Origin: Ranitomeya imitator
Taxonomy: Eukaryota
Assembly: GCF_032444005.1 (NCBI RefSeq)
Contig: NC_091286.1
Coordinates: forward strand, 434,558,001-434,622,000
Direction of reading: 5' to 3'
Length of the DNA: 64,000 nt
Part shown: positions 1 to 63,511 of the stretch, piece by piece
Position numbering within the stretch: position 1 is the stretch's first letter
How the letters are laid out: each line of letters starts with the position of its first letter
Program-made: the position numbers and the translations under genes
Notes under the pieces: model-generated
The model's database searches: none
What the model saw: only the letters and a program-made list of their open reading frames with translations
Told to the model about the DNA's origin: nothing

Positions 1-14
1 ATTGTCGCGGATTC

Positions 15-4765: not shown

Positions 4766-4904
4766 CAAATTTTTCATTAAATGCTAAATATTTGTTAGCT
4801 ATTTGTAAAATGTTTTTCATTTTATAATTTTTGTAAAAATTAGTGTAATATTTCTAATTTTTTATAACTCTACATTATAATTGCCCTCTACCTTTGCTTT
4901 GCAG

Positions 4905-5188
4905 GTCAACAATGTTTTAGTTTCTCTCCCTGCTGACGTGTTTGGCATAAGCATCATAAGAAATGGCCAGTACGTAGTAGTTAACACCAATTTTGGACTC
5001 CAGATTAAATTCAATGGAGATCATGAATTATTTGTTATAGTGAGTGAGAAATACAAAGATACATTGTGTGGATTGTGTGGCACATACAATGATAACCGCT
5101 TTGATGACTTCACAACGCCTAATGGCATTATTGTAACTGATGTCAATGACTTTGGAAACAGCTGGCGAGTACCAGATGATGGATGGCC
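4905..5188 (+). CDS. Exon: VWD C-terminal half (copy 1)
   Basis: GCAG/GTCAAC...TGGCC/GTGAG; [11 protein letters not shown]; phase 0-2. Confidence 0.92.
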
Positions 5189-7076
5189 GTGAGTATTTTC
5201 TTATCTTATCTGTCCATTTGTTCGTTCACTTTTACATATAGTCATTTTTTTGCAATGTGAGATCTAACTTTGCTATATCTATATTTCTGTAGATGTGGCT
5301 CTACTCCTCCTCCTCCACCTATGTGCCTTCCCAACATAGAGCAAGAAGCTGAGGCTAAGTGTGAAATAATAAAGCTGCTCAATGGCCCCTTTGCACAGTG
5401 TCATGCTCTCATTCCACCATATCAATACTTTGAGAGTTGCGTGTATGACCAATGCGCGACAGGAGGGAATGATACTTATTTCTGCAGCTCACTAGAATTT
5501 TATGCTGCAGCATGTGAAGCAATAGGAGTCATTCTTGGCGATTGGAGACAGGAAACTAATTGTGGTAAGAAGTTAACTCCTTTTTATCATAATGTATTAT
5601 TAAATATGTTATGTTGTATTTTATAAATGTTATTTTTGCTTTTAGGAGAAATAAAAAGCACAAGTCCACCCAAAACCACCACCACTGCAGCTACAACAAC
5701 TACTACTATTACTCCTACAACTATTGGCTGTGACACAGTAGGAACCACAACTTCAACTACACCAGGTAAATGGTTTTACTGCATGATATTATATAAACAT
5801 GATAAATGTTATAAAATGAAAGGCTAACAAAATGATAAGTAGGTGACTATTTGCAGAGTATAAGAGGAAAATCAAAGATAAGGAACTGAATGCTCATAAC
5901 AGTAAACATGGTACATTGATGTTTGGGCTACATGCACTAGATAACTGCATATTTCAGATTAAGATCTAGGTAGAATCTAGTTTAGGAAGTGGAACATCAA
6001 GGCAATCCTTATATATCCTTGTGACTAAAGGTTTGAGAAATGTTAGACCATGTACCTGCTGAGTCATATTCACACTTGAGACAGCTAGGAGACAGAGACA
6101 GAGAGGCGGCGCTGGAAGAGACACAATAGACAATTGAGTATAGACGGGTCTGTGGTCATGTAATATTATCTGTGGTCATGTGTATTATTTTTGAATATTC
6201 TATTTTTACGTAGTAATTTTCAAATCCCAGATAGCCCCCTTTTTAATTGTTGTAAAGCATTCATTGAAATATGCAAAGCTTCGCTAATAAGCTGGAACTG
6301 ATACTTGCAATAGGCTCCTTATGATTAAGTGAACTTAGTTAAAAATTAATATGCTTCCAAAATTTTTAAATCTGAAAAAAAAGTGAGCAGCACATTTTCT
6401 GTACAATATTTTCTACCGCTTTAGTTTATATGGATTACAAATAGAATTTGGTTACATGTGATTCTTAAAGATTGGTTGATGGATCTCCATGGCAAAAATT
6501 CAGTCTGTGGTTAGCACTGATTCTTCTATAACATGAGTGATCATTTTTCCACTTGTTTATACATTTTACCAACTCAATATCAATTGTTTCCCCTTCAACA
6601 AGTTAAACTACTTAAACTATTATTCCTACAAACCCAAGCACCACTTTCCAATCTAAATCTACACCTCCTACCACTGTCACGTCCACTGAAACGTCTACTA
6701 TAGTTGCTTTATCCATCCTGACTTGTCGCACCCCATTACAATCCCCTCCAATATCTTCAACATCCACTACAGGCAAGAGAACAAACATCGCTGAGTAAAA
6801 ATAACAATTTTTTCATGTAAATAATACAACTTAAAACTAAGTTAAACCAAATGTATTATTCAATAGTCATGACCTAATTAAAATTAGTAAATGGTACATT
6901 GTGTTTCAAACAACTTTTAGATCAATATTATTATGCTCTCATTTTTTAGATAAGACTACAATCACTCCAAAACCAATTGTTTCGACTACACAAGGTAAGA
7001 AGAAGAAATATGGAATCTGTGAAAGATCTCCATAACTATATTATTCTTGTGAAATTCGGTTTAATTCAATATGTTA

Positions 7077-7144
<68 letters not shown>

Positions 7145-10100
7145 TGTACCTATATCTATATAACCTAAAGGCCAAAACATGAGGATCCCAATTTAATATT
7201 GCATCTGTGTCTGTTTTTGTACTATTTGTGTGTTTTTTTATGCCTATTTTTTAAATTTATGACTAATTCTTCTTTTAATTTGGGTCTTTTTTGAAGTCCC
7301 TTTTTTTATGTAGAAGATAAGAGATAGCTGGCACTCCAAATAGTGTAACAAATCATTATTCAGGCAATTCAAACAGGTCAATGATGTTTCGGCCTTGTGA
7401 CACGGGACTTCATCAGTTGCGTAAATAAACAAAACATCTAAAAGTCATATGCATATACACGTCACACATTAAAAGTAATTTGCAATCTTAATTACAATTA
7501 TCACATAACTATCATTTCATATTCGTTAAAAAAGGAAAGAAATATAAAAGGGAAAAATAAGCACTTATGTACTTTATGAGAGATAAATTCATTCACAATG
7601 ATCCAAATTTAATAAAGAAAATGTCTGAATTAGAGAAAATCATCTCTTTGAATCGTCTTAGTATTTCTTCTATACATGTGACAAAGATCTAAGTCATAGT
7701 AGGTGGTTATGGACATGCCCAAAAGAAGAACTGTATAAAAACATAACCATGACATGGTAATGGCAAAAAAAAATGAAGGGGAATTTTCAAGGTAGATGAA
7801 AGTAAATCTCATCGGATTGCAACAACAGCAACAAGAGCCATCGGGGTAAGGTATTTACAATAGTTAGTCAAATCACCTGGTGCTGGGCGCTCATCTACCC
7901 TGATTTATTTATATTCATGTTTCATTTCAGAAGTGCATGAAATGTCAATTATCTCCCTACAAGAGTATTCTTTTGAGCATGTCAATAACAAACTAATATG
8001 ACTAAGGCTAGTTTCACATTTTTGGTCGGGAGGACTGCGGATGGTAGCGTACTTCTTCATTCTTGCTCCTTCAAGCCCCGCCTACACTGCGTCTACTGCT
8101 CCATGCATCCTGTGTTGTCCTGCGTACCTATCTTTAACATTGGGTATACAGAGACGTGCGTTGTATGCGGATGCGTCCTCATGCGGCGATTGGATGTGTG
8201 CGGCGACCGCACAGAAACACAAAATTTAAAAAGATAGGTACGCAGGGCAATGCAGGACACATGGAGCAGCAAGCGGAGCATAGGCGGGGCTTCAAGGAGG
8301 AAGAAGGGAAGAAGTGCACTGCCATCCGCAACCCTCCCGACTGCAAATATGAAACCAGCCTTAGATTTGTGTCATATGTATATAATTAATGCTAAGAGAT
8401 GATTCTCTCTAATTCCGCAATTTTCTTTGTATCATGGTGAATATATATATCTCTCAGTAGGACATAATACTTGTTTTATCTTTTCTTTTTTTCCTTTTTC
8501 TTCTGTAATATGAAATGATACTGTTTTGCGATATTTGTAACTAGGTTTAGAAATTTACTTTTAATGTATGACATGCATATGAATTTTTCATGTTTTGTTT
8601 TTTTACACGTTTTCAGTCATATTTTGACCATATATTTTTTTCTGTACTATGTAGTGTCTGATGAAGGCCTGTGTCATAGGGCCAAAATGTCATTGACCTA
8701 TATGGATTGCCTAAATAAAGACTTGTTATGCTACTTGGAGAGCCAAGTGTCTCTTATCTTCTTCATGTGCATGGAGTGGAACTCTTTTTGAGCACCCAAT
8801 TCTTTTTCTTCAAGAGTGCTATATATTTACCTATTCACTTTTTTATGTGTGTGCTTTTTTTTTAGCTTTCCGATGTGGGTGGGATTTTTGGCATTTATCT
8901 TTTTTTAATTAATTCATTTGCGACTTTTAAAAAAGCCACAACATTTTATGTGAATGTGCACTAGTCTCTTGGCAGAGTTATTTTATATGAGCTAAAAAAT
9001 TTTGCACAATTTTTAGGACAAAGTGTGTGACTTTTTCACTAATAGTTCCAAAAAATGTTAAAGACAGAAATAATGATATAAAATTTAGACCGCACACGCC
9101 ATTTAATAAAATAAGTGTAAAAAATGGAATCCAATACCACAAGACAAAAAAGAAAAGTGACTTAAAACATGCAGGGCTAAAAAGTTTAATCACTTTTTTT
9201 AACCTTCTGTAATTTGTGTAAATTGCACACAGATATGACATACTGATATGTGTTTGTGTTCGTTCTTCCATATTTAGGGAAATGTGACATAGGCTGCTCT
9301 TTTGATTCTGGTTTCTGTAACTGGAAACAATCAAAGTCTGATAAAATTGACTGGATACGCTGGAGAGGTGCTACACCATCTGAACTCACTGGACCTTCCC
9401 TTGACCACACAACAGGAGGTATTGGTCTTCTTCTATAAAAGTTACAAATTATATTCAAAAATAGAACCATTCCATGCCCCAAAGTGATACTTGGATTGTT
9501 ATTTCAGATGGATACTATCTCTACATTGATGGTGAGAAGTCAAAAGAGGGAGACATGGCAAGATTAGAGAGTCCTGCTTATTGTTACACTGGCTACCAGT
9601 GCCTCAGGTTCTGGTACCACATGTATGGAGCTGCAGATTACATGGAGCTGAATGTGGCTGTCTTAAGAGATGATGGTATAGAATACGTGACCTACCTAGA
9701 AGGAAATCATGGTGATATGTGGCTGTTAGAAGAGATCTACTTGCCTGACAGTGACATCATCCAGGTAATGTTGTGTTTGTTTCCTTATTATTCATACATA
9801 ATTAGCAATTAAGAAATGAAACTAACTCATACAGTATACACTTACTGAATACATGCATCATACATGCAAATATACACTTACTATGTCACTTATATTTTCA
9901 AGATTTGTGATGAACCTTGGGAGACATCAGAGGAGAATTCTAACTACATTTTTTTAAAGATTATTTCTAATATAAGCCAAATTTTCCTTTCAATGGTTGA
10001 GTCTTAAAGGCTATGGTACATACAGTATGTACTTTACACCATAGCAGTATCGATCACTATTGCAGTTTAAGAAAACCACAGTAAGCTTAAATCAGCACCT

Positions 10101-13100
10101 TTCTCTGATATTGCAACCATGTATGTTTTACTTTAAAGTGTTGCAGCGTTTAAGAGAAAGCGTGTTTTAAATAACCATTGCAACTAGGGAATGATGCAAC
10201 CAGGAGGACTCGTCCAGGAGGTAGGCCCCCACAGTTTCTCCCCACCCTGCATGCAGACAGGTCAATCCCTATATACAAAAATAAGGAAAGACTTGTTGGT
10301 CTAGGGAAGTGGGAAAGAGAGAACATGACTTTTGAACTAGTCACCCCAGTTGCATCAAAACAAAGAATGTTTTCTAGGAAACGCTGCAGAGTGAAAAATA
10401 CATGGATGCAATAAAGGAGATGGTCTCAGATTCTGGCTTCCAATAGTTCAGCTGATAAGATCCCTTCAAGGTTATATTACAATGCATTATTTTCAACAGA
10501 TTCAATCAAACAATGTAATAATGTTCATTAGTTTTTAATGTGCATTTTTCATTTAATTTTACTGAATAAATCTACGGGATTAACCGATTTCTAAACATTG
10601 AAGCTTCATTTCATGGCTTTAACAAATCACACTGACTCTTGTACAATTTATGATCATAAGACAGACCAATCAGTTTGTTGAGGAAGCTACTAAATGATTT
10701 ATTCTAAAATGGCTAAAGCGCTAATGAATATTCATGAGCAGCAAATGTAATTAACATGCAGAGAGGACATTCAGGAGGATTACAGAATGTGCTGTATGAA
10801 GACAATAACCTTCTCATTGTGCACAAAATATAGAATATTTTGATCTATCATGATTTCACAAAAACATAGAGGAGAACATGTCAGATACTTTATTATACAT
10901 TATGTTTACAGATTTTCATAGAAGGCAGGAGAGGAGAAGACTATCGTAGTGATGTGGCCATAGATGACATCTCTCTTACACCTGGGTATTGTGGTAAGTA
11001 ACAAATTAATACTTTTTACAGTATACACCACATGCTATGTTTCTTATAGAGAAAATATGTACTATTTGCATTAGTCGAATCTATACTTTCAGCTTGTAGA
11101 GTAGTACATGATATATTTAATAAAACATACAGATGAAAATATTGCTCTCATCCATTCCAAGACCAGGTCATTTTCCGCAGTTAATGATCAACCACATTTT
11201 TTTAATGTATTTGCGTTTTAAGAGCTCTAAAATTTATTCTCTGCAAATAGCATGTCCCTTATGTTTTATTATGTCTAGAATAGATAGACTTCAGAGCTTA
11301 ATAAATGTGATAAGTGAAAAATAAAAAAATCCAAATACTTACCGTATGGCCCATTTCTACAGCCCCTCCACTGATCTGATCCTGGCTGTACGTGCAGATC
11401 ACTGGAATCCAAGTAGGTCTCACGCTGGGCTGGTACTTCTTTAATGGAGCCTGGGAGTGTTCTGCGCATATGTGTGCAAGGACATGGCATATCTCTGTAA
11501 CATCATGACCTTTCGTGCACTTGCGCAGAACCCTCCCAAGCCCTCTTAAAAGCGGAATGTACCCGCCCAGCTTGAGAGGCCCAGAGATTTCCGCACAAGC
11601 ATGGGTGTTCTGAAGATGCAGCAAGGACTGGACAGGTAAAATAGAGGGGCCAGAGGGGTGATTATAATAATTTTTTTTATACCTTTTAGGGTTTATAAAA
11701 ATGGCAGCGAGCAGCTGCACTTTTGCTGAATCCAAACAGAAATGAATTACAAAAAATCTGCATACCAATTCCATTTGAATTTATTTGCACATCTCTCATA
11801 TTTCCTGTTTTAAAATCTAATTGTGAGCCAAGTCCAGTGTAAATCTGCAGGACTAAAGCTTCTTTAAAAATAATCAATATCTATTGATTTTTTTTACCCA
11901 TAATGGTTTTTATAAAAAGAAAAATCAGTATTTTTTTCCTATCAACAGAAATCTTGCATGGAAAATATGTACTGCTGTTGTTATCACGGCATATAACTTT
12001 TTTTTAGAGGTTTTAGTGAAATCTGAGAAGGTTGAGTAGTGGGGAGTTAGATATAATCAGTAGAAAAAGGAGATGAAATTCATATTTGATGATCTATTGT
12101 GACATTATATTATTACTAAGAATCATATAACTAACATATAATCATATCACTAAGAAACATGTAATGTTAATAAATGATAATCATTGCAATAATTGTCTTT
12201 TTAGTTAAAGCAACAACTACTACCACCACCACAACCACAACCACCACTGCAAAAACGTCAACACCAACAGGTATGCAGCAATAATAATTTACATTAGTTT
12301 AGGCTTTTTTAGGCCATTTACTGTATACACCAACTGGACATCACAGTCATGATGTTGGAGAATGGAGCGGCTTAGTTCCCATACTGAGCAGGCACTGACT
12401 ATGCTACACAGCCAGCATCAGTCTATAACAGCAGTGACAGGAAGCCGCTCATATTGCTTCTGATTAACCATGTAAATGCCACTGCCAATCACTAATAGCG
12501 GCATTTAATAGCGCTTTCAATTGTTTACTCCTGCACTTACTATCATTGGCTCCTGTGATATAAATTTGGGGCTCTAATAGGTTACCTGCTGAAGACCTCC
12601 ATAACTACCATGTTGAATGGGATTCACAGGAAAACATTAATTTAAAGAGGACCTGTCACCAAATTAAAAGTCACCAATTTTTGTTGTTGAACTCCAGCTG
12701 CTCCCCCGAGCATGCCATGCCTTTTTTGTTTTTCTATTAAATCTGTCATTCAGTTCCAAAAAATATGGGCCTTTTATTTAGTAATTAGTAACTAATTTTA
12801 TAGTTTTTATTTTGGGGCTGCGCTCACAGAGTAATTATGCAGAGCAACTTGAAAACATTCCCCCAGAGAATCCTGTGAGCAAAGCCCACTTGGAAAAGAT
12901 CAGAAAGGTTAGCATTAAAAAAAGTAAGGCCATACCTCTCGAACCATATGCTGGATTATTTAGGGGAGCAGTAGGATCAAAAAAGTACAAAAACCTTTTA
13001 AGGCTATGTTCACATGTAGAGCTTTTTGCTGCATTTGTTATACAAAAATTCATCTGAGTTTCACAGTACCAGCAAATCTATGAGATTTCAGAAATCTCAT

Positions 13101-27674: not shown

Positions 27675-27713
<39 letters not shown>

Positions 27714-45700: not shown

Positions 45701-48700
45701 AAATGTACCCTGACAATAAGGCAGCAATAAAAACATAGCAAAAACTACGCAAAACTTGCTTTTTGTAAGCAGCTTAAACACAGCTTAAACTTTGCATGGC
45801 AAAAAAGCTGCAAAAACGCTACATAGCATAACTATGTGCTTCATAGTAGAACCTTAGAATCTTTAAAAAAGAATTCATGACCATAGCTTTAAAATTATAA
45901 TTTTACACCTTCCTTGGATGTTACATTAATTCTTTGTAAGAACAATATCTTTATTTTTCCTTATCTTTTTATAGTTATCCCATCTATAACAACCACAAGC
46001 ATAATAATGGATACAGGTAAATACATATAATTTTATGATCAATACTAAATCTAAGGCTGATTTCTCATGTTTGTGAAGCATGGACCATACTTGGCTCACA
46101 CCATCCGGCTCGACCACCAAGTTTCCCAAACTGGGCTATCTTATAGGCTTAGAGAGCCATTGGTTGGGCTAGGTATTCACAAATTTATTAAACGGGTCTC
46201 ATTGTTGTTCCTATGTAGGATACTCTAAAACAGGGGTGGGGATCTTTTTTCTGCCAAGGGCTATTTGGATATTTACACCATCCTTCGGGGGGCCATACAA
46301 ATTGTTTGTTATCTCCGTCCAAAAAGTTCGTCCTGATTCTGGCACTGGTGTCAGGACGTAATCTTTCATTGCATGTGCCTCAGTGTTCAGTAGTGAATGC
46401 TGTGTGTGTGTGCTCACAAAGCAAAAATAAATTATTGGGCCCATGGCAGTCAAAATACAGCTGCTGGCCCAAGTGCTGGGGTCCTCGGGAATCTGCTCAG
46501 GGGCTGGATACAGGGTCATCTATACCCTCAAATGGCCTGCGGGTCTGAGGTTCCCCTCCCCTGCTGTAGACGTACTAGAGCTATATTTTTTTTCATGCAC
46601 ATTACAAACCATACGTATTATTATAGTAGATATGATATCTATATAATACAGCATATATTGTATGGAAACCATACGTTTCTATAGTTCTATACATAATGTG
46701 TTTAAATGTGACATTTTTAAGCTGCTGCTAAATTCAAATTTTGTCAATTTTCAAAAACTACTGTAATTCATGTATTGTATAATTTTCTGTCCTTTTTCTT
46801 TTGATACATGCATAATTGCAATAAATTATAAAAAGTATATCGCTGTAATTTCGTTTGATACCTTTCTCATGTATAATATGTAATATTATAAACTCTATTT
46901 TATAATTCATCATGTCATGTTGTTCGTCATTGCTGTTTAATTTCATATAAACACATATATAATTATGGTAGTGGAACCTTTTCGAGATGAGCAAAAATTT
47001 CCTTTAAAAGTGAATATCTTGCTGTCAAAAAAGGTGGTCACTAGTCATGATAGTAAATGATATGTGGTGGGTATAACTTTAAGTAATGTCTGTATAAGGG
47101 GTGGTCTTCTCAAGGAGATCCTCTATTGAAAAGGTTTCACTGTATACACAAATAAATATATAATATATATATTATATTATATATATAAATCTCTTGCCAT
47201 CTTGTCTACCATATTATAATTTATGTCTCTTTTGGTTCCTATTGTATGTACAAAATATTTGCATGTTAAAAAATATTAAAGATATAAAAAAGTGACATTA
47301 CAGATATGGGAGGGCTGAATTTGGCACTATTTCTTTCTCACGAGTGCCATTTGAACAAAATCTGCTCTGCTTTATCTGAATATTGCATGATTGTGCAAAA
47401 TGCATAATGCACTTAAATTAAAATTATATTTAATTTACTTTTTAGAAATGGTTAAAAATAAAATAAAATGTTACATTTTTACAACTTTTTATACTTTTTT
47501 ATACTTATGTGCTTTTGTAATTCCATTTTGCACAACTAAATCTTTATTTTCGAGGTCCACAGCTTTAATCACAGTTTAAAGAAAACACTTCATATAAATA
47601 TACATTTTACTAGTGAAAAGAAAATACATCCATCCAGTAGAATGTTTAGATTAGCAGCTATTAGAGATTACCAAATCTGCCAAGATTTGTTTTTGCCAAA
47701 TAATGTGTATTTTATGGAGCAATTCATTTCACATCGTAATTATTCAATGGAAATGGAACTCTCCTTTTATACCCTCAAGGATCTCTGCAAACCTCAGAGT
47801 ATAATAAATGAGGATAATAAAAAATATACTTTCCTCATTGCTCACCTGTCCCACTACTCACTTGTCTCGCTGTCCCTTAAACACACCTTCTGGACCTCCG
47901 TGATTCTTTCTGCATTCCCCTATTTCATGCATTCTCTTCTGCCTGCTTTACTCTGTGCTGGGTTTTCCTGTTCCGAGTAAGCCATTGACATTACTGCACA
48001 CTGTGCTGTTGCAGAGTTTGTTGCGATGTCATCACGTTAAGATGTGCGTAGCCCGAGGAATAGTTAGTGCACAGTTATGTTAGAGACTTCCTTGGTGCTG
48101 AAAGACATACCCTAGAGTAAAGCAAGTTGAATAGAATGTGCAGGTAATGCGAAAAGAAGCATGGTCTGTGCAGGTGATGGGACTAGTAAGTGGTATTATT
48201 AATATTGTTTTTTAATATTTGCTGGTCCTCTACAATTTGACAAAATGGTAGTCGTAGCTAACTCCCATATTGTTGAATTCACATGGAAAATTTTAAAAAA
48301 TCTGTATTTTGTAGAATGCAAATTTTTGTAAAATATGGCGAGAATTCAATTCCATAGTGACAGATTTGACAATCTCTAGCAGCTGTAAATTGTTTAGCTT
48401 GAAAACTGTTAAGCTATGATCACTTCCAAGTTTAAAATTTAGAGTGCTCCCAACATATATATATATGCTAGTAGGGTGTAGTGTATCCCACTATAGCCCA
48501 TTGAACATTAGAGCTGTGGTTTTTGAAGGTATCCATGGACCTTCTGAGATCATTTCCATAGTAGGCAGTAGTTTAACAGTGTCCAACACTGGAATCAGGA
48601 TTAAGACCAAATCAGATATTTCTAATTTACCCTGAACACCAGGGTTAGAAAGGTTACCCATCATGTCAGAAAGTCCTTTCCCTAACCACTTTCTGACAGC

Positions 48701-51700
48701 ATCCTGAGCAATTATTCAGGCTGATGATCTGCTTAATCAAAAGTGTTCATCTGATGCCACCAGTGGTATAAATGTGATTTTTAGGCATATTCACTTGCGA
48801 GAAGTGGTCTCACTGTACATTTCCTGATATTATAATTTTATCTCAGCTGGGAACAATCCAGAGTTTTCAGACATATATTTCTTGTCTAACATTAGGTTTG
48901 TGACAGATGCTATACAGTGTACTATGGTATTACATGTCTTTTTTTGTGGTATACTAATGTATGCCAACTAGACATAGTCCAAAATGAAACTCTTTTAGTA
49001 CATCCAGAGCATTCCTGCTGTACTTATTAAATGTAGAGGAAAATTACAATGTGAACAAGGCAATATACCTGGCTTAGGTTGAAGTAAACAGAAAGCTTAC
49101 ATTTACACATACTGTAGGTTAGTACACATACACACAACACATCATACCCATGCAGACAAATATATGTGCACAATTATGCACACACACATTTAATTTAGCC
49201 AACACAGCAGGAATTGATGAAACACTGCAGTGATGAACTGCAGTCATACATATCTAAATACAACTCATGAAAAACAGAATCTACAATTTCATCATCAACA
49301 ACAGGTTCCACTTCTGAAACCACAAGAACGACAATCCCTGCAACAAGTACTACTACTTTGTCGAAAACTGAGTCTATTATTACCGAAGAACCAACTACCA
49401 GAGTAACCATACAAGATAAAACTGAAGACAGAACAACCATCTTTTCAACTGATGCAACTGTTCGCTTGGAGACTGATCCAACAGTTTTAGCATCAACAAG
49501 ATCAACATCAAAAATCACAGTAGCAACTTCACCAAGAACATCTACTTCTCCACCAGACATTTCATCAGTTTCTGCAGCCCATACATCTTCAAAGCAGACA
49601 GGTGTCTCCACAACTGATATACCAGATATTTCTTCTGAGAAACCAGAATCCATACCAACCAAACCACTCATCACAGAAGATGCAACTCCTACAATACAAG
49701 CATCAACAACAGTTTTCATATCAGAAACAATAAGAACATCTTCATTAGGAACAGCTACTGACTCTACATCAAAGATAGCAACTCTCCCCAAGACAACTTC
49801 AAGGCAAACAGAGTCTGTAGAAACTATATCTGTAATTACTGAACAAACTACGATTATCTCAGACAAAACAAACCCTGTGGTGTCATCATCTGCAATTACT
49901 GGAGCACCTATCATTAGTGCAACACCTAGCAGAACATCTACTATAACTTCAGATGCCTCAACTGTTTTCACTTTGCAGCCTGGTTCCACATCTCAAATTA
50001 CGAGAACCACTGAGAGTCCAGAAACAATGACTACTACACCAAATAAAATTACAGCTACAATGAAAACAGCTACCATTGCAACAATTTCTGAGACTCCAAG
50101 TTCCATCACATCTCCACCAATCTCTAAATCAACAACTTCTACAATTTTGAGTTCTACAAATAAAGACTCCATATCAACATCCTCAAGTTCAGCAACTCCT
50201 ACAACATCTAAAACAACAATTGCAGGTATGTTTTCACTTCAGGTAAAATAATTTATTTTCATCCACTCAATTAAAGTGTAACTAGCATTCCAAAAAATTG
50301 CAAGTAGACAGATCTTACTTATGTCTCTTAAATCTGCCCCATAAGTAATTTAGTTCTTCGGATAGAGGATTACTGGGAAGAATAGCAGTCTAAGACTTTG
50401 TTCAAACCTGTATTCAATATGGAACTATATTTTCATTAAAATGACAGCCATTAAGACAGAAACTCTATGTATCTCATTATATTCAATGGGGTCCAATGGG
50501 TGCCCCTGGCTTCCATCATATGCAGATTTTGGCACTGATTTTTAGTTACTTATATTCTGTTCTTATAACAGAATAGAAGAAAGAAAATAAATTGTCTCCT
50601 CTCCAAATCATACCTCACCACTTGTGCACTAGACCCCTTCCAATCCCACCTCCTCCTCTACCACACCATCACACTTATCCCATCCCTAACCCATCTCTTC
50701 AACTTATCACTAACTTCTGGTACCTTCCCTTCTGCTTTCAAAAATGCCACGATCACACCTATCCTTAAAATGCCAACCCTAGACGCAACCACTATGTCAA
50801 GCTATCGTCCAATATTGCTAAACTCCTGGAGCAGCACGTTCACGCTGAACTTTCCTACCAACCCTCATCTAACTTGCTCTTTGACAATATTCAATCTGGT
50901 TTCCGTCCCTATCATTCTACTGAGACTGCCCTGACCAAAATGATTAACGACTTACTTACAGCCAAAGCTAACGGACAATACTTTATATCCCTCCTTTTAG
51001 ACCTGTCCTCTTCTTTCGACACAGTTGACCACTACCTCCTACTACAGATCCTCTCCTCCTTTGGCATCAAAGACATCGCCTTATCCTGGATCTCCTCATA
51101 CCTTTCCAAGTGCACATTCAGCATCTCCCACTCCCACACTACCTCCTCATCCCACCCTCTCTCTGCTGGAGTCCCCCAAAGCTCTGTTCTAGGACCCTTA
51201 CTCTTCTCAATCTATACACTTGGCCTGGGACAACTCATAAAGTCCCTTGGATTCCAGTACCACCTGTATTCTGATGACACTCAGATCTACCTCTCTGACC
51301 CAGACGTCACCTCTCTGCTGTCCAGAATCCCAGAGTGTCTATCAGTCATATCCTCCTTCTTCTCCTCTCGCTTCCTCAAACTCAGTGTGGGCAAATCTGA
51401 ACTCATCATCTTTCCTCCATCTCACAGATCTTCCTTACCTGATCTATCTATCACCATTAATGACATCACGCTTTCCCCCGTACCAGAAATCCACTGCGTT
51501 GGTGTATCCCTTGATTCTGCCCTGTTCTTCAAACCGCACATCCAAGCTCTTTCCACCTCCTGTCGCCTCCAGTTCAAAAATATCTCCAGAATCAATCCTT
51601 TCCTCAACTCTCAATCTACTAAAATACTTATGCATGCCCTTATCATCTTCCACCTCGACTACTGCAACATCCTTTTCTGTGGCCTCCCTGCTAACACTCT

Positions 51701-54299
51701 CGCACTTCTCCAGTCCATCCTTAACTCTGCTGCCTGGCTAATTAATCTCTCTCTCCTGACTACTCCACTGCTTCTCCCCTCTGCAAATCTCTTCACTGGC
51801 TCCCATTACCTCAGCATATCCAGTTCAAATGACTAATAATGACTTGGAAAGCCATCCCCAACCTATCTCCTCCATATATCTCTTACCTAATCTCCCGATA
51901 TCTTCCCTCACGTAATCTTCGGTCCTCCCAAGACCTCCTTCTCTCCGCCACACTTATTCGTTCCTCACCTAATTGCCTCCAAGACTTCTCCTGAATATCC
52001 CCAATCCTCTGGAATTCTGTGCCTCAACACGTCGGACTATCAACCACATTCGGATCCTTCAGACGGAACCTGAAAACCCATCTCTTCAAGAAATCCTACA
52101 GCCTGCAATGACCCCACTGCCTCCTCACCACCACTGGAGCTACCCTCTCACCAACACCAGAGCTGCCACAACCCCCCAACCCATTGTCTCCTTTCCCACC
52201 ATCTCATAGAATGTAAGCCCGCATGGGCAGGGTCCTCACCCCTCTGTATCAATCTGTCATTGTTAGTTCGCTTACTGTAAGTGATGTCTGTAATTTTTAT
52301 GTAACCCTTTCTCATGTACAGCACCATGGAATCATTGGTGCTATATAAATAATAATAATAATAATAATAATAAAAAGCACAGATGCCAATGAAGCCTTAG
52401 AAAGAACTACTTCCGCTATACTAATTTAGCATAAATTTTATTGAATATCACAACATAAATGACAAGAAATAGACAGTATTGGGTTAAAATATCACCAAAC
52501 TACATGGAACTCATGGAGACAGGACAACATCCCCACAGTACATCACTAGGACAATGGGCGTTAGATATAAAGTAGCGGTACATACTTCCCTGCATGTTCA
52601 ATGTAAATAGCCGTATCACAATAATAGTACAAACATGAACACACAGGTGAAAGAGTGCATCTATAAGTATACATGCACATCAATGTCAAATAGACATGTC
52701 CCAAATGGGAAACATACCTCTGATGTAGCAGAGGAGATGTGTCAGGGGTGGGCTGGAGCTGACACATCTCCTCTGCTACATCACCGGTATGTTTCCCATT
52801 TGGGACATTGATGTGCATGTATACTTATAGATGCACTCTTTCACCTGTGTGTTCATGTTTGTACTATTATTGTGATACGGCTATTTACATTGAACATGCA
52901 GGGAAGTATGTACCGCAGCATTATATCTAACGTCCATTGTCCTAGTGATGTACTGTGGGGATGTTGTCCTGTCTCCATAAGCTCCATGTAGTTTGGTGAT
53001 ATTTTAACCCACTACTGTCTATTTCTTGTCATTTATGTTGTGATATTCCATAAAATTCTTTAATTTTTATTGGACTTTTTGCACCAATTTTTCTAGTGGT
53101 TTGTGCTTGATAAGCATTGGTGTGTTCCATATTACTCCATCAACAGGTTTATGCCAACCATATTGTATTGTTTAATTTGACAACATGCTTGGATGGTTAT
53201 ATCATTATTGCCTGTTTTGTTTTCCTTGCTTTCATAATTTAGCATAACTTTTTAAATAGTAGGAAAAAATAATGTTGAAGTATACTACAGATTCATAGGT
53301 CAAGAGAAATTCTACCTGACGGTACTTTTTGTTTTAAATAGTCAAACATAGAATCCTGTCAGGTCTTATTTTATCCAAAGCATGATGGGATAAAAAATTG
53401 AATTGTATTAAAATTTTCTGTTACTTGCTCTTGGTTTTGAATAGAAAAATAGTTTGCACCAATTGCATCTATATTTTTTGGTATAACATATGTAACATGG
53501 TTTAACAGTTATACTTCAGGTTTGCCTTTTTATTAACAGATCCAAAATATTTAAATGCTAAGTACAGAGATGAGCATGTTGTTCGGTGTATATTTATTGA
53601 TGAACACAGTTAGTGCATTTTTATATATACAGATAAAATGTTTGTTGATATTGTATCATTTTTTTAAATATTTGTTTTACTTTGTGTCTATTTGTTTTAT
53701 GCTCAACATTGAGAAGTGCTTAAAATAGCGGTCTTCTGTTTTGTGTTTTAAGTTGTCTGTCATCTTTCATTCCTTGTCAAATTATTGGTATAAAAATGTT
53801 TATATCAAGAGAAAAACCTGATGGCTCATCCCCATATATGCAAATTAATTAAAATTGGACTTGTAATCCATAGACTAGCTGCAACCATCACGGTGAAGCT
53901 CACAACCTGATTATGAAAACAAATACTTTAAGAAATGCAAAGTCAATATTCCTTCACTATTAAGTTATTTTTAATTCCTGTTATTTGCCTTACGTTGCCT
54001 TAAACTTAAAATTTATGCCTATTGTTACTGTGAACTGAAATGAAAGAAAATATAAATTTTTCATGCACTACTGTACTTGCTGTACGTTTATTCTAAAACT
54101 ACTTTACTTACATGTTCAATGTCATAGCTCATTTTAAATACATATATGAATCCAAAATAAATGATATATGTTGTATCTTACAGGTTCTACTCAAACAACA
54201 TTTTCCACAACACCTTTCGTACCACCAAATTCTGGTATGTTTTTTTTCTGAGTAATTTAACATATGCAATATTTAAATGATTAGATAAATAGAGATAAA

Positions 54300-54372
<73 letters not shown>

Positions 54373-55015
54373 TGTTATTGCTATCTTAGAGGCTTAGTTT
54401 GGGCTTGCATTGGTGATCTTTTATGCTAATAAAAGAAAAATGTGATGATTTGTATTAAAAAAAAGAATAGTGTCATTTTCCAACATTATAGTGTTGTTTT
54501 GCTTGTTTTTTTTATGCAAACAACCATTAACATGTATGTAAATAATTAGCTAAGATTTACATAAGATCTTTTGTGAAGTCTTATATACTGACACTGACCA
54601 TGGAAGCATTCTTTCCAGCATTTCATAGTTACGTTTCAAAGTTCCCCTGTGCTATAATCTAGAAAAAATATTTTATTCATTGACTTTTTTTTCATCAAAG
54701 TGCGTGTGTGTTTGGTGTTATCAAAAATGGCATTAATTTAAATTAACATATGATATTTTTTTTATTTTGACAGGTAATTGTGAAGTTAGTGGTGATCCCC
54801 ATTATTACACGTTTGATAATCAGGTTCACCACTTTATGGGAACATGCACCTACACCTTATCCAAACTCTGCAAAGATGAAGGAAACCTTACAGACTTCAA
54901 TGTGGAAGCGGCAAATGAGAACAGGGGAGGCAACACCAAAGTGTCCTATGTTAAATATGTAAATGTGTATGTCTATGAATACAAGATCACGCTGGAAAAG
55001 AATAGAGTTGTTAAG
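4905..55015 (+). CDS. Multi-exon FCGBP/zonadhesin/mucin-like gene (VWD-C8-TIL, MAM and PTS modules), partial at both ends
   Basis: Chain of GT-AG exons with compatible phases; GDPH and CGLCG VWD motifs, C8 and TIL cysteine patterns, MAM motifs. Confidence 0.92.
5293..5564 (+). CDS. Exon: polyproline linker plus C8 domain (copy 1)
   Basis: GTAG/ATGT...TGTG/GTAAG; FESCVYDQC...YAAACE; phase 2-1. Confidence 0.92.
5646..5765 (+). CDS. Exon: PTS, 120 bp (copy 1)
   Basis: TTTAG/GAGAA...ACCAG/GTAAA; Thr-rich; phase 1-1. Confidence 0.88.
6603..6772 (+). pseudogene. Probably degenerate PTS exon
   Basis: Thr/Pro/Ser-rich frame [10 protein letters not shown]...STSTT ending at a GC donor (ACAG/GCAAG); TAA at 6613 in the PTS frame. 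Confidence 0.45.
6950..6994 (+). CDS. Exon: PTS, 45 bp
   Basis: TTTTAG/ATAAG...CAAG/GTAAG; [14 protein letters not shown]; phase 1-1. Confidence 0.75.
7077..7143. repeat. (TA)n microsatellite; others at about 27678-27710 and 54300-54370
   Basis: Seen directly. Confidence 0.95.
8006..8360. mobile_element. PIF/Harbinger-like MITE
   Basis: TIR GGCTAGTTTCACATTT versus GGCTGGTTTCATATTT; flanks TAA/TTA; absent at the paralogous site near 41740. Confidence 0.7.
9278..9418 (+). CDS. Exon: MAM part 1 (copy 1)
   Basis: [10 protein letters not shown]...W...[10 protein letters not shown]; phase 1-1. Confidence 0.92.
9508..9764 (+). CDS. Exon: MAM part 2 (copy 1)
   Basis: ARLESP...[10 protein letters not shown]; phase 1-0. 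Confidence 0.92.
10912..10993 (+). CDS. Exon: MAM part 3 (copy 1)
   Basis: IFIEG...[14 protein letters not shown]; phase 0-1. Confidence 0.92.
12205..12270 (+). CDS. Exon: PTS, 66 bp (copy 1)
   Basis: TTAG/TTAAA...ACAG/GTATG; poly-Thr; phase 1-1. Confidence 0.85.
13002..14404. mobile_element. Old Harbinger-like MITE interrupted by an L1 fragment
   Basis: GGCTATGTTCACATG...CATGTGCGACCATAGCC termini; uninterrupted paralog from about 45366. Confidence 0.55.
13452..14359 (+). mobile_element. 5'-truncated L1/Tx1-type LINE
   Basis: ORF 13463-13891 resembles an ORF2 C-terminus (IFWQCP...FW); A-rich tail; 14-bp TSD TTTGCATTAAAAAC at 13438 and 14360. Confidence 0.75.
14557..14598 (+). CDS. Exon: PTS, 42 bp (copy 1)
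   Basis: AATAG/TTATC...ACAG/GTAAA; phase 1-1; paralog at 45975. Confidence 0.78.
14751..15080. mobile_element. Old hAT-type MITE shared by both duplicate copies (paralog 46231-46563)
   Basis: CAGGGGTG...TCCCCTG termini; decayed TSD. Confidence 0.6.
15866..15946 (+). CDS. Exon: PTS, 81 bp
   Basis: ATCAG/GGTCA...CCAG/GTATG; [26 protein letters not shown]; phase 1-1. Confidence 0.82.
16576..16938. mobile_element. PIF/Harbinger-like MITE
   Basis: Perfect 20-bp TIR GGCTACTTTCACACTAGCGT; TAA TSD on both sides. Confidence 0.88.
17835..18076 (+). CDS. Exon: VWD N-terminal half with GDPH
   Basis: [25 protein letters not shown]; phase 1-0. Confidence 0.93.
18251..18534 (+). CDS. Exon: VWD C-terminal half
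   Basis: VCGLCGNFN; phase 0-2. Confidence 0.93.
18572..18889. mobile_element. T2/Kolobok-like MITE
   Basis: TTAA flanks; termini AGGGGTTGTCCAC versus AGGCATTGTCCAC. Confidence 0.65.
19004..19281 (+). CDS. Exon: C8 domain
   Basis: [16 protein letters not shown]...CFYDLC...YAQSC; phase 2-1. Confidence 0.92.
19503..20098 (+). CDS. Exon: TIL, VWC-like linker and VWD N-terminal half (NDPH variant)
   Basis: [18 protein letters not shown]...[13 protein letters not shown]; phase 1-0. Confidence 0.92.
20199..20775 (+). CDS. Exon: VWD C-terminal half plus C8
   Basis: [16 protein letters not shown] linker, CVFDLC; phase 0-1. Confidence 0.93.
21240..21442 (+). CDS. Exon: TIL domain
   Basis: [18 protein letters not shown]...CVEGCEC; phase 1-0. 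Confidence 0.92.
21559..21939 (+). CDS. Exon: VWC-like linker plus VWD N-terminal half with GDPH
   Basis: [14 protein letters not shown]; 381 bp; phase 0-0. Confidence 0.93.
22412..22695 (+). CDS. Exon: VWD C-terminal half (copy 2 of 4905-5188)
   Basis: Same length and splice sites; near-identical protein. Confidence 0.93.
22806..23077 (+). CDS. Exon: C8 (copy 2 of 5293-5564)
   Basis: 272 bp; phase 2-1. Confidence 0.92.
23159..23278 (+). CDS. Exon: PTS, 120 bp (copy 2)
   Basis: Same peptide as 5646-5765. Confidence 0.88.
23592..23786. mobile_element. Short Harbinger-like MITE
   Basis: Imperfect TIR AGCCAAGTTCACACATTCAGTATT versus GGCCACGTTCACATGTTCAGTATT. Confidence 0.55.
23794..25470. 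mobile_element. Non-autonomous hAT element containing a CA/TA-rich low-complexity tract (about 24110-24810)
   Basis: CAGGGCCGG TIRs; exact 8-bp TSD CTTACTAT. Confidence 0.88.
26083..27948. mobile_element. Non-autonomous Harbinger-like foldback element
   Basis: TIR GGCCGCCGTCACACA (1 mismatch); TGA TSD confirmed by the empty site at about 7626; internal inverted repeat of about 270 bp. Confidence 0.85.
29105..29902 (-). repeat. 3' LTR (798 bp)
   Basis: TGTT...AACA termini; PPT adjacent at 29903-29917. Confidence 0.93.
29846..34078 (-). CDS. gag-pol: Intact single-ORF Gag-Pol with chromodomain (unit 1; likely start MDIRS at 33964)
   Basis: [14 protein letters not shown] knuckle, [20 protein letters not shown], chromodomain; no stops. 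Confidence 0.95.
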   Translation of the reverse strand: MILNRGKKEVLRPFFFLCTVFCLFFPLDIWVVQYTGVAMDIRSLSSFVDQLSARVQKIQDTIDQKAMLEPRIPIPDLFFGDRTKFLSFKNNCKLFLALKPRSSGDPVQQVLIVISFLRGDPQDWAFSLAPGDPALSNIDAFFLALGLLYDEPNSVDQAEKNLLALCQGQDEIEVYCQKFRKWSVLTQWNESALAAMFRKGLSEALKDVMVGFPMPAGLNESMSLAIHIGRRLRERKSVHHLAVLPELKPEPMQCDRTLTRVKRQEHRRLNGLCFYCGDATHAISDCPKRTKQFARSATIGTVQSKFLLSVTLICSLSSYSVMAFVDSGAALNLMDLEYAKRCGFLLEPLQCPIPLRGIDATPLAKNKPQYWTQLTMCMAPAHQKVIRFLKLHNLHDVVVLGLPWLQTHNPVLDWKSMSVSSWGCQGVHGDVPFLSISSSTPSEVPEFLSDYRDVFDEPKSDALPPHRDCDCAINLIPGSKFPKGRLFNLSVPEHAAMRSYVKESLEKGHIRPSSSPLGAGFFFVAKKDGSLRPCIDYRLLNKITVKFQYPLPLLSDLFARIKGASWFTKIDLRGAYNLVRIRRGDEWKTAFNTPEGHFEYLVMPFGLANAPSVFQSFMHDIFREYLDKFLIVYLDDILIFSDDWESHVKQVRTVFQVLRANSLFVKGSKGLFGVQKVSFLGFIFSPSTIEMDPVKVQAIHDWTQPTSLKSLQKFLGFANFYRRFICNFSSIAKPLTDLTKKGADLVSWSSAAVEAFQDLKRRFSSAPVLCQPDVSLLFQVEVDASEIGAGAVLSQRGSDCSVMKPCAFFSRKFSPAEQNYDVGNRELLAMKWAFEEWRHWLEGAKHRVVVLTDHKNLTYLESAKRLNPRQARWSLFFARFDFVISYLPGSKNVKADALSRSFVPDSPGLSEPAGILKEGVIVSAISPDLRRVLQKFQANKPDRCPAERLFVPDRWTNKVTSEVHCSVLAGHPGIFGTRELVARSFWWPSLSRDVRVFVQSCGICARAKPCCSRASGLLLPLPVPKRPWTHISMDFISDLPVSQKMSVIWVVCDRFSKMVHLVPLSKLPSSSDLVPLFFQHVVRLHGIPENIVSDRGSQFLLRFWRAFCGRMGIDLSFSSAFHPQTNGQTERTNQTLETYLRCFVSADQDDWVSFLPLAEFALNNRASSATLVSPFFCNSGFHPRFSSGQVESSDCPGVDTVVDRLQQIWTHVVDNLTLSQEKAQRFANRRRRVGPRLRVGDLVWLSSHHIPMKVSSPKFRPRFIGPYRISEVLNPVSFRLTLPDSFSIHNVFHRSLLRRYVAPMVPSVDPPAPVLVEGELEYIVEKILDSRVSRRKLQYLVKWKGYAQEDNSWVFASDVHAPDHVRAFHVAHPGWPGGSGEGSVTPPQGGGYCCEFCGRAPSCGHKCYFG
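34101..34891 (-). repeat. Shared middle LTR (791 bp)
   Basis: Has a PPT on one side and a PBS-position sequence on the other; private 11-bp deletion. Confidence 0.93.
34884..39065 (-). CDS. gag-pol: Intact single-ORF Gag-Pol with chromodomain (unit 2)
   Basis: Nearly identical to unit 1; no stops. Confidence 0.95.
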   Translation of the reverse strand: MILNRGKKEVLRPFFFLCTVFCLFFPLDIWVVQYTGVAMDIRSLSSFVDQLSARVQKIQDTIDQKAMLEPRIPIPDLFFGDRTKFLSFKNNCKLFLALKPRSSGDPVQQVLIVISFLRGDPQDWAFSLAPGDPALSNIDAFFLALGLLYDEPNSVDQAEKNLLALCQGQVEIEVYCQKFRKWSVLTQWNESALAAMFRKGLSEALKDVMVGFPMPAGLNESMSLAIHIGRRLRERKSVHHLAVLPELKPEPMQCDRTLTRVKRQEHRRLNGLCFYCGDATHAISDCPKRTKRFARSATIGTVQSKFLLSVTLICSLSSYSVMAFVDSGAALNLMDLEYAKRCGFLLEPLQCPIPLRGIDATPLAKNKPQYWTQLTMCMAPAHQKVIRFLELHNLHDVVVLGLPWLQTHNPVLDWKSMSVSSWGCQGVHGDVPFLSISSSTPSEVPEFLSDYRDVFDEPKSDALPPHRDCDCAINLIPGSKFPKGRLFNLSVPEHAAMRSYVKESLEKGHIRPSSSPLGAGFFFVAKKDGSLRPCIDYRLLNKITVKFQYPLPLLSDLFARIKGASWFTKIDLRGAYNLVRIRRGDEWKTAFNTPEGHFEYLVMPFGLANAPSVFQSFMHDIFREYLDKFLIVYLDDILIFSDDWESHVKQVRTVFQVLRANSLFVKGSKGLFGVQKVSFLGFIFSPSTIEMDPVKVQAIHDWTQPTSLKSLQKFLGFANFYRRFICNFSSIAKPLTDLTKKGADLVSWSSAAVEAFQDLKRRFSSAPVLCQPDVSLLFQVEVDASEIGAGAVLSQRGSDCSVMKSCAFFSRKFSPAEQNYDVGNRELLAMKWAFEEWRHWLEGAKHRVVVLTDHKNLTYLESAKRLNPRQARWSLFFARFDFVISYLPGSKNVKADALSRSFVPDSPGLSEPAGILKEGVIVSAISPDLRRVLQKFQANKPDRCPAERLFVPDRWTNKVTSEVHCSVLAGHPGIFGTRELVARSFWWPSLSRDVRVFVQSCGICARAKPCCSRASGLLLPLPVPKRPWTHISMDFISDLPVSQKMSVIWVVCDRFSKMVHLVPLSKLPSSSDLVPLFFQHVVRLHGIPENIVSDRGSQFLLRFWRAFCGRMGIDLSFSSAFHPQTNGQTERTNQTLETYLRCFVSADQDDWVSFLPLAEFALNNRASSATLVSPFFCNSGFHPRFSSGQVESSDCPGVDTVVDRLQQIWTHVVDNLTLSQEKAQRFANRRRRVGPRLRVGDLVWLSSRHIPMKVSSPKFRPRFIGPYRISEVLNPVSFRLTLPDSFSIHNVFHRSLLRRYVAPMVPSVDPPAPVLVEGELEYIVEKILDSRVSRRKLQYLVKWKGYAQEDNSWVFASDVHAPDHVRAFHVAHPGWPGGSGEGSVTPPQGGVLL
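39076..39085 (-). promoter_or_regulatory. Non-tRNA primer-binding site complementary to an LTR-internal sequence (also at 34089-34098)
   Basis: Element-sense ACAGGAAGCC lies 2 nt after the LTR, with no TGG; its complement GGCTTCCTGT is at 39708-39699. Confidence 0.7.
39088..39889 (-). repeat. 5' LTR (802 bp)
   Basis: Same termini; followed by the GGCGAT TSD. Confidence 0.93.
42651..42791 (+). CDS. Exon: MAM part 1 (copy 2)
   Basis: 141 bp; 2 substitutions versus 9278-9418. Confidence 0.92.
42880..43136 (+). CDS. Exon: MAM part 2 (copy 2)
   Basis: 257 bp paralog of 9508-9764. Confidence 0.92.
43383..43464 (+). CDS. Exon: MAM part 3 (copy 2)
   Basis: 82 bp paralog of 10912-10993. Confidence 0.92.
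44318..44380 (+). CDS. Exon: PTS, 63 bp (copy 2; one Thr codon shorter)
   Basis: Paralog of 12205-12270; phase 1-1. Confidence 0.85.
44552..44834. mobile_element. hAT-type MITE
   Basis: TAGTGATGAGC TIR; exact 8-bp TSD GCAGTGAC; empty paralogous site at about 12430. Confidence 0.9.
45975..46016 (+). CDS. Exon: PTS, 42 bp (copy 2)
   Basis: Paralog of 14557-14598. Confidence 0.78.
49278..50225 (+). CDS. Large PTS mucin exon (about 316 codons); 5' boundary uncertain
   Basis: Open Thr/Ser-rich frame ending at GCAG/GTATG; the candidate acceptor ACAG/AATC gives phase 1-1 but has a weak pyrimidine tract. Confidence 0.75.
50595..52372 (+). mobile_element. Decayed L2-clade LINE (RT region and 3' end)
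   Basis: [23 protein letters not shown] and [11 protein letters not shown] motifs; (AAT)n tail; frameshifts; 5' boundary approximate. Confidence 0.85.
52434..53057. repeat. Long palindrome with arms of about 300 bp and a 13-nt loop
   Basis: 52434-52745 is the reverse complement of 52759-53057 with few mismatches and one 13-bp indel. Confidence 0.92.
54184..54234 (+). CDS. Exon: PTS, 51 bp
   Basis: TACAG/GTTCT...TCTG/GTATG; [16 protein letters not shown]; phase 1-1. Confidence 0.8.
54774..55015 (+). CDS. Exon: VWD N-terminal half with GDPH (older paralog of 17835-18076)
   Basis: 242 bp; [15 protein letters not shown]; phase 1-0. Confidence 0.92.
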
Positions 55016-55195
55016 GTCAGTTCCTAACAATTAACTAATGTATTACATAATGTTATTACAATCTATTTTGTGTGCATGTTTTATAGTAATTATTTCTATA
55101 GTAGTTCTTTCAGTATAACTTAATGGAGTATGAGAATTAATCCTAAATGTATTTAGAACTAAATGATACAAGATCATAACATTAATACATTTATA

Positions 55196-57648: not shown

Positions 57649-57989
57649 ATTTGTAATGAATGTTTATTTGCAATGTGGTTTTGACTTACTCTATTTTTTT
57701 GGTAAATAATGATTTTATTATTTTCATTGTTTTGCATCTTCTTGGCAATAATATAAAGAAGACGCGACAGGACAACACTCGGTGGATGCCATATCTGTGT
57801 TTAAAATTGAAAAAACCTTTCAGTTAACTACGTGCAGGAGAAAGTTATTGTAGCTGGTGGCCATTTTTAGTACTGTACCAGATTTTTGTTGTATGTGTTT
57901 GTTTTTAATGTTAAAATGTCTGCATTTGATATCTCTCCAGTATTTTCTTTTTTATAAGCAAAATACTTATTTTTATATTTTCTGATGTT

Positions 57990-63304: not shown

Positions 63305-63511
63305 TGTTTTAAAAACGTAAACAAACTAACGGTATTTGTTGCTGTCACACAAATTACACGGTGAGCTATAACTTCAGTATGATTTAGCTACCCCTTTACA
63401 GGTGAGTGAGACCACAACGAAAATCAGGCACAATGTTACACACTCTGTTGTTGGTGGCAACAAATGAGAGAGATGCCACACACGCAGGACTGTCACTGAA
63501 GCACAAATGTA

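Follow-up and report, generated by a model that had tools for sequence, protein, structure and literature searches.

Probable internal modules of a very large zonadhesin-like gene, with interspersed MAM domains, in a frog

Is a frog gene in which single MAM domains recur between Thr-rich linkers and VWD-C8 assemblies a new kind of mucus protein, or a member of a known family? The question is raised by a window of 64,000 nt (the whole stretch of DNA analyzed here) from Ranitomeya imitator. The window is AT-rich, gap-free eukaryotic DNA in which the plus-strand open frames between 4.9 and 55 kb, read from stop to stop, form a series of Cys-rich and Thr-rich pieces. We find that it very probably contains the internal ~1.7 modules of one very large plus-strand gene of the vertebrate zonadhesin-like or 'IgGFc-binding protein-like' family. 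A module would comprise two units, a and b, each consisting of VWD-C8-TIL-TILa, and a third, c, consisting of VWD-C8 without TIL, followed by one MAM domain between Thr/Ser/Pro-rich (PTS) linkers. The module appears to be ancient and to have been re-duplicated in tandem at the DNA level in this frog.

Twenty stop-free single open frames were searched separately with Pfam, and the joined gene model was kept out of these searches. The domains were recovered with E-values of 1e-7 to 1e-25 in the order VWD C-half, C8; two MAM pieces; VWD N-half, VWD C-half, C8; TIL with TILa and VWD N-half; VWD C-half with C8; TIL; TILa with VWD N-half; VWD C-half, C8; two MAM pieces; VWD N-half. This order on the plus-strand frames is identical to the VWD-C8-PTS-MAM-PTS-VWD-C8-TIL-VWD-C8-TIL-VWD-C8-PTS-MAM-PTS(long)-VWD arrangement proposed in the initial annotation. 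Together with the exon chain described below, it gives the unit order c-MAM-a-b-c-MAM-a, with five VWD domains of which two are cut by the edges of the window. Units a and c carry the motif GDPH, unit b carries NDPH, and every third unit is without TIL. No TIL was found between the C8 and the PTS/MAM exons, where the C8-to-PTS intron is 81 nt long and its splice is present in RNA contigs. The description of single MAM domains between O-glycosylation-type linkers, with no TIL after C8 in every third D unit, holds. CysD, VWC and CK domains were not found by Pfam in the frames of the window, and the termini of the gene are outside it. By tblastn, no further VWD, C8 or TIL was found after 55015 up to 64000. 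This last stretch holds a hAT-like ORF and tandem repeats, so the gene probably extends past the end of the window.

The gene is expressed, in four RNA data sets. In a run search with the region 4859-10858, six runs came up, and five of them contain a small fraction of its words, as expected for exons alone. Word depth is roughly 40-160 in exon bins and 0-10 in most intron bins; the bin 6859-7058 is deeper in two runs because a mini-exon (b) lies inside it. RNA contigs of four public runs (X1-X4) were placed on the same region at a likeness of at least 90%, many pieces being 90-95% alike. The GT..AG joints 5188>5293, 5563>5645 and 9416>9506 occur in all four runs. The joint 5763>9276 is found in two of them, and the pair 5763>6948 and 6992>9276 in two. 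Since the joints skip introns at GT..AG, the material of the runs is RNA. Once the cuts of the joints were shifted to canonical dinucleotides, the exons were 4905-5188, 5293-5564, 5646-5765, an optional 6950-6994, 9278-9418 and 9508-9764.

One 1596-nt contig spans VWD-C8-PTS-mini-exon-MAM, and a 3026-nt contig extends another 2.4 kb upstream, reaching the D units before these exons; these contigs were assembled from near-identical modules, and chimeras between copies are possible. Loose contig ends match two other parts of the window exactly, at 21905-21934 (the end of a VWD N-half exon) and at 43383-43412 (the third MAM exon of the second copy). The X3 contig carries the mini-exon with zero mismatches, and X2 includes it as well. 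As this mini-exon is unique in the window, copy 1, or an identical copy elsewhere, must be transcribed. Run X2 bears another organism label and has the same joints, which points to a splice pattern common to a relative.

We assembled 28 plus-strand exons from 4905 to 55015, whose ends were set from the RNA joints, from alignments to homologs and by examining the borders. Each exon is bordered by AG and GT, and the phases, chained locally, give 2151 codons with zero stops. The outer coordinates given in the initial annotation, 4905 and 55015, are true exon borders. Its claim that the pieces form one mosaic gene of the FCGBP/zonadhesin kind is borne out by the chained phases and by the spliced RNA contig that joins VWD-C8-PTS-MAM.

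The chain opens in unit c of the previous module with the VWD C-half (4905-5188; open frame 4881-5189, Pfam 6e-17; phase 0 to 2), where RNA contigs extend over 4900-5188 and resume after the splice at 5293. It continues with the C8 that has no following TIL (5293-5564; Pfam at 5261-5623, 1e-22; phase 2 to 1), which has GT..AG joints on either side in four runs. PTS exon a (5646-5765, 40 codons, 65% S+T+P, phase 1-1) is bounded by the joints 5563>5645 and either 5763>9276 or 5763>6948. The alternative PTS mini-exon b (6950-6994, 45 nt, 15 codons) occurs once in the window, in copy 1; it is present in the X2 and X3 contigs and skipped in X1 and X4. The first MAM domain is encoded by three exons. 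RNA joints define exon 1 (9278-9418; Pfam at 9247-9435, 3e-7) and exon 2 (9508-9764; Pfam at 9465-9809, 4e-16), the latter through the joint 9416>9506 of all four runs. Exon 3 (10912-10993, phase 0 to 1) has a translation that starts with IFIEG and was placed by its borders and by tblastn to the MAM ends of orthologs.

After the first MAM domain the chain proceeds through three predicted PTS exons to a complete set of units. PTS exon c (12205-12270, 22 codons, good splice sites) is conserved at 44318-44380, and exon d (14557-14598, 14 codons) at 45975-46016. The peptide of exon e (15866-15946, 27 codons) is like the MAM-to-VWD linker of Engystomops (...TTSQPLGPP|GSCEV). Unit a then begins with a VWD N-half containing GDPH (17835-18076; Pfam at 17819-18097, 6e-18), a VWD C-half (18251-18534; Pfam at 18245-18535) and a C8 (19004-19281; Pfam at 18993-19370, 1e-24; phase 2 to 1). 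A single exon (19503-20098; Pfam at 19490-20125) holds the TIL and TILa of unit a and the NDPH-bearing VWD N-half of unit b. Unit b continues with its VWD C-half and C8 (20199-20775; Pfam at 20103-20789) and with a TIL (21240-21442; Pfam at 21203-21496, 1e-15; phase 1 to 0) for which an alternative acceptor is possible at 21231. The exon at 21559-21939 (Pfam at 21541-21945), in which the first exact match of loose contig ends falls, combines the TILa of unit b with the VWD N-half of unit c, again with GDPH.

The second copy of unit c comprises a VWD C-half (22412-22695; Pfam at 22388-22696), with 93% amino acid identity to the frame 4881-5189 that holds the copy 1 exon, and a C8 (22806-23077; Pfam at 22774-23136, 8e-23). 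Its PTS exon a (23159-23278, phase 1-1) encodes a peptide identical to that of copy 1. The MAM exons of copy 2 are at 42651-42791 and 42880-43136 (Pfam at 42620-42808 and 42837-43190, the second at 5e-16) and at 43383-43464, where the second exact match lies. They are followed by the predicted PTS exons c (44318-44380) and d (45975-46016), both phase 1-1 and conserved with respect to copy 1. A predicted long PTS exon, present in copy 2 only (49278-50225, 948 nt, 316 codons), has a phase-1 acceptor AG and the donor CAG|GTATGT. A predicted exon f (54184-54234, 17 codons) is placed by phase 1-1 and splice signals. The chain closes with the GDPH-containing VWD N-half of the next unit a (54774-55015; Pfam at 54737-55024, 1e-17).

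Phase 1 is found at the end of the C8 exon of unit c, at the start of MAM exon 1, at the end of MAM exon 3 and at the start of the VWD exon of unit a. All PTS exons are phase 1-1, so PTS exons can be added or skipped without a change of frame. The short ones have 14-40 codons each and are 54-81% S+T+P; the sole long one is 49278-50225. The PTS regions of the initial annotation are thus present around the MAM domains, although most of them are short. The long exon is 54% S+T+P and lies within a 326-codon open frame in AT-rich DNA. Its acceptor pyrimidine tract is weak and its donor strong. TRF detected no tandem repeat in it, and neither self-comparison nor tblastn detected a counterpart in copy 1. 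Two of the three predicted PTS exons that follow the MAM domain of copy 1, c and d, have conserved counterparts in copy 2. The junctions that lead from MAM through PTS exons c, d, e, the long exon and f to VWD are predicted from phase, splice signals, conservation between copies and one comparison with Engystomops.

Two further PTS candidates were rejected. One is a 60-codon plus-strand open frame at 6616-6795 (57% S+T+P), within the intron that separates PTS exon a from mini-exon b; no pair of splice sites compatible in phase was found for it, and the spliced RNA contigs skip it. A low-depth unspliced contig overlaps it, and it may be a decayed or seldom-used PTS exon. A long PTS exon in the A-rich block at 28-40 kb was also considered; this block is a tandem dimer of a minus-strand LTR retrotransposon.

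A self-comparison aligns 4859 to ~15200 colinearly with 22366 to ~46700, at 78-89% nucleotide identity that extends through the introns. VWD-C8-PTS-MAM is therefore repeated because a genomic module was duplicated in tandem. Copy 1 extends over ~17.5 kb and copy 2 over ~32 kb, the greater length of copy 2 being due to transposon insertions. A degenerate simple repeat of ~0.8 kb (24010-24850), which is His/Thr/Tyr/Ile-rich in all plus frames, lies at the start of the copy 2 insertions. The largest of them, in the PTS-to-MAM intron, is a 10.8-kb tandem dimer of a ~5-kb LTR retrotransposon on the minus strand (29105-39890) whose units are 99.2% identical. The A-rich, GC-richer block at 28-40 kb is due to this dimer.

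Other mobile elements lie at the edges of the chain. A plus-strand Ty3/gypsy-type (chromodomain) pol with protease, reverse transcriptase, RNase H, integrase and chromo domains occupies 1-4513 and has an in-frame stop at 2318-2320. It sits at the site expected for the upstream VWD N-half exon of the first module, which suggests that an intron was invaded and that the exon lies before the start of the window. A plus-strand reverse-transcriptase fragment (50769-51833; RVT_1, 8e-25; 355-codon open frame) lies 0.5 kb 3' of the long PTS exon. Two tandem-repeat arrays, at 56104-57535 and at 57988-59272 (119-bp period, 97-99% identity in the second), are downstream of the last VWD exon and probably in the next intron. 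A BED zinc finger and a C-terminal dimerisation domain of the hAT type are encoded by an unbroken 1196-codon ORF on the minus strand (59738-63325), and this ORF is a hAT transposase that looks active or else a domesticated gene of the ZBED type.

Proteins with the same period were found among the relatives of the MAM domain. A HMMER search with MAM exon 2 against 1.84 billion representative sequences gave 1530 matches, of which the best 150 were domain-mapped locally. The ranking was dominated by multi-MAM proteins, and the best 150 were re-sorted by local domain maps (phmmer/jackhmmer) and not by E-value. MAM and VWD occur together in 23 of the best 150 of the 1530. Several of these 23 are long proteins in which two VWD-C8-TIL units are followed by VWD-C8-MAM, as in the window. 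All are computational predictions. Those named 'IgGFc-binding protein-like' come from the sharks Stegostoma (XP_059507175), Chiloscyllium and Hemiscyllium (XP_060690392), with up to 7014 aa, the caecilian Rhinatrema (XP_029473208, 6378 aa), the gecko Paroedura (XP_077204093), Anolis (XP_062833065) and the turtles Eretmochelys (XP_077682968) and Caretta. Three other frogs are represented by Discoglossus (KAM4694334), Leptobrachium (A0A8C5QIV1, named 'Zonadhesin') and Engystomops (KAG8540508, partial). The best tblastn identity per exon ranges from ~36% to 83%, and Engystomops, a hyloid like the frog of the window, is the highest of the five proteins compared (up to 83%).

The 4837-aa Stegostoma protein has 11 VWD, 11 C8, 5 MAM and 8 TIL domains by Pfam. 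It has no FCGBP N-terminal domain in the Pfam scan and starts with a signal-like peptide followed by MAM-MAM. Both the shark and the caecilian proteins begin with MAM, and signal-like peptides open those of Stegostoma and the gecko. At the C-terminus, the gecko, anole and turtle proteins have a hydrophobic segment with a short basic tail behind it, whereas one shark protein has an EGF-like end. With such zonadhesin-like endings in the orthologs, a membrane-tethered form is possible and a purely secreted 'scaffold' is not assured. The database name 'IgGFc-binding protein-like' does not convey the zonadhesin-type endings of the squamate and turtle proteins.

The module of these predicted orthologs is identical to that of the frog. 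C8 abuts MAM in sharks and turtles. In sharks the linker before MAM has 7 residues and the linker after it 4-28 (27-28 and PTS-rich in Stegostoma and Chiloscyllium); in turtles the values are 5 and 0-3. In the caecilian, gecko, anole and Discoglossus proteins, MAM lies between PTS linkers. The lengths before and after MAM are up to 107 and up to 56 residues in the caecilian, up to 105 and 32-55 in the gecko, 5-8 and up to 475 in the anole, and 45 and 245 or 683 in Discoglossus. The 'PTS-MAM-PTS(long)' arrangement is therefore not peculiar to this frog, given the long linkers after MAM in other species.

A maximum likelihood tree of VWD C-halves was built from single exons of the window and the matching parts of six orthologs (56 rows, 95 columns), chicken and salmon not being included. 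Each unit of the window falls into a position-specific clade with shark, caecilian, turtle, gecko, anole and frog units, with support of 99/97 for unit a (18251-18534), 99/99 for unit b (20199-20775) and 100/99 for unit c (22412-22695). The last triplet of each protein forms separate clades. The units are likewise arranged by position in a FastTree of the N-halves, with starred support of 99 for b and 97 for c and unstarred support of 86 for the a units, among them 17835-18076. The N-half at 54774-55015 groups with ordinary a-position rows (unstarred 86) and apart from the terminal triplet, so at least one more module should lie downstream. As the positional clades include sharks, the module of three units plus MAM is older than the split between sharks and tetrapods. 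The near-identity of modules inside each species reflects later duplication or homogenisation.

A member of this family was published in 2005. Hunt et al. (BMC Genomics 6:165; PMC1325057) described the chicken FCGBP-like protein XP_422715 (4770 aa), which has three MAM domains with mucin-type sites after each; in the tree of these authors, VWD1/4, 2/5 and 3/6 pair. They grouped it with fish zonadhesin-like genes, for which gut expression is reported, in a family distinct from zonadhesin. In zebrafish and pufferfish, the zonadhesin orthologs keep the domain order of the mammalian protein and are syntenic, and the zonadhesin-like genes are separate from them (PMC1325057). In Lang et al. 2016 (PMC4948705), FCGBP is defined by the N-terminal FCGBP_N domain and zonadhesin by MAM, and the periodic MAM form is not treated. 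MAM-bearing FCGBP-like proteins go unmentioned in the papers on Xenopus skin mucus and amphibian glues that we consulted.

The features of the zonadhesin-like/FCGBP-like family are all present in the window gene, namely MAM, PTS and VWD together, a MAM period of three D units, and D-unit orthology. With the chicken protein (zlg in Hunt et al. 2005) the frog gene shares MAM, mucin-type stretches and VWD/TIL in one protein, several single MAM domains spread along the chain, and a D-unit period of three. It differs in having PTS linkers on both sides of MAM, multiple mini-exons and a 316-codon exon, the chicken side of this comparison being the text of the paper alone. Human and mouse FCGBP also have many VWD-C8-TIL assemblies, with GDPH motifs for autocleavage and with blocks that recur internally. 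However, they lack MAM and PTS linkers between units and start with FCGBP_N, whereas the Stegostoma ortholog of the frog gene is without FCGBP_N. Triplet repeats in human FCGBP were reportedly described by Harada et al. in 1997. Mammalian ZAN is the sole well-studied vertebrate protein with MAM, mucin-like and VWD regions, and its TM-plus-tail end resembles that of the squamate orthologs. In ZAN, however, an N-terminal MAM cluster precedes a single mucin region and D0-D4, while the frog gene has a single MAM after every third D unit. The gel-forming mucins (MUC2/5/6/19 type) carry a long central PTS region between D1-D3 and D4/VWC/cystine knot, often with CysD, unlike the frog gene, whose PTS stretches are mostly 14-40 codons with one of 316 and whose termini are outside the window. 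We know of no member of the periodic zonadhesin-like/FCGBP-like family with a known biochemical function.

These comparisons bear on what the gene is not. The initial annotation had regarded it as lineage-specific and as matching neither known protein, that is, as an amphibian invention of a new mucus scaffold whose interspersed MAM domains have no counterpart. Such a reading could draw on human FCGBP, which has no MAM, on the N-terminal MAM cluster of mammalian zonadhesin (PMC4948705; PMC1325057), and on the 316-codon PTS exon and mini-exon b, each confined to one copy. It is nevertheless extremely improbable, since annotated orthologs with the same architecture were found among jawed-vertebrate predictions, the period being present in sharks, a caecilian, three other frogs, a gecko, an anole and sea turtles, with D-unit orthology by position and a chicken member in print since 2005. 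It is also very unlikely that the locus is a decaying or non-functional duplicate with pseudo-exons in a transposon-rich region, the RNA coming from intact copies elsewhere. The gypsy element, the LTR dimer and the reverse-transcriptase fragment make up a heavy transposon load, and the RNA contigs were placed at a threshold that admits many pieces of 90-95% likeness. However, 28 of 28 exons are open, in phase and with canonical splice sites; the mini-exon unique to copy 1 is mismatch-free in one RNA contig and included in another; and the exact matches of loose ends tie contigs to the locus.

Two further alternatives concern the relation to named genes. A true frog FCGBP ortholog that gained MAM domains would explain the name 'IgGFc-binding protein-like' given by NCBI to the long orthologs, as well as the many VWD-C8-TIL units, the GDPH motifs and the triplet periodicity. 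It is improbable because FCGBP is defined by FCGBP_N (PMC4948705), and the shark ortholog opens instead with two MAM domains behind a signal-like peptide; the corresponding end of the frog protein is outside the window. Less readily dismissed, yet still doubtful, is that the gene is the frog ortholog of zonadhesin (ZAN) itself, with the mammalian N-terminal MAM cluster and D0-D4 as a reduced derivative of the periodic form and with an EGF-TM-tail anchor. The hydrophobic and basic ends of the gecko, anole and turtle proteins, the EGF-like end of one shark protein and the opening MAM without FCGBP N domain in shark and caecilian fit this idea, as does the use of 'Zonadhesin' by UniProt for the Leptobrachium member and of 'zonadhesin-like' by NCBI for many fragments. 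However, the database names are automatic, and the MAM domains of the window are interspersed, with no N-terminal-cluster arrangement. In addition, fish have a syntenic zonadhesin of mammalian order next to separate zonadhesin-like genes, and the chicken periodic protein belongs to the latter group (PMC1325057). Membership in the zonadhesin-like or 'IgGFc-binding protein-like' family is the reading that we favor.

What the protein does may be considered by analogy with FCGBP, mucins and MAM proteins. The D assemblies would form disulfide-rich units, of which those with GDPH (a and c) would self-cleave at Asp-Pro and stay disulfide-linked; GDPH cleavage with disulfide retention is reported for FCGBP (PMC8267560). 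The PTS linkers could serve as O-glycosylated stiff spacers whose length is set by the number of phase 1-1 mini-exons included, and the MAM domains as adhesive or oligomerising knobs on these spacers. The whole protein may then be an extracellular adhesive glycoprotein of mucus or of the cell surface, and a function in skin or gut mucus is plausible. The apparent local points of this frog gene are modest, and consist of the phase 1-1 PTS mini-exons, one of them alternatively spliced, and the 316-codon exon in copy 2 only. We tentatively raise the possibility of a conserved giant gnathostome adhesin, perhaps membrane-tethered, in which the spacing of the MAM domains is tuned in this frog module by module through gain or alternative splicing of PTS mini-exons (15 codons in copy 1, 316 in copy 2). 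If true, this would be a general 'exon-cassette' way to set the length of a glycosylated stalk inside a D-assembly protein.

The frog gene is a member of an old, little-studied family that is annotated from sharks to reptiles, and its domain layout was already known. This removes a false lead, as interspersed MAM domains mark an old vertebrate gene type that is widely annotated and whose first description, from chicken, dates from 2005. The near-identity of its modules tends to make automatic pipelines break the frog gene, and the set of exons given here, with an RNA-verified alternative PTS mini-exon, is a clean start for its annotation. The family is conserved from sharks to frogs and reptiles and is expressed at clear depth in this frog, and its place between FCGBP and zonadhesin bears on the origin of both.
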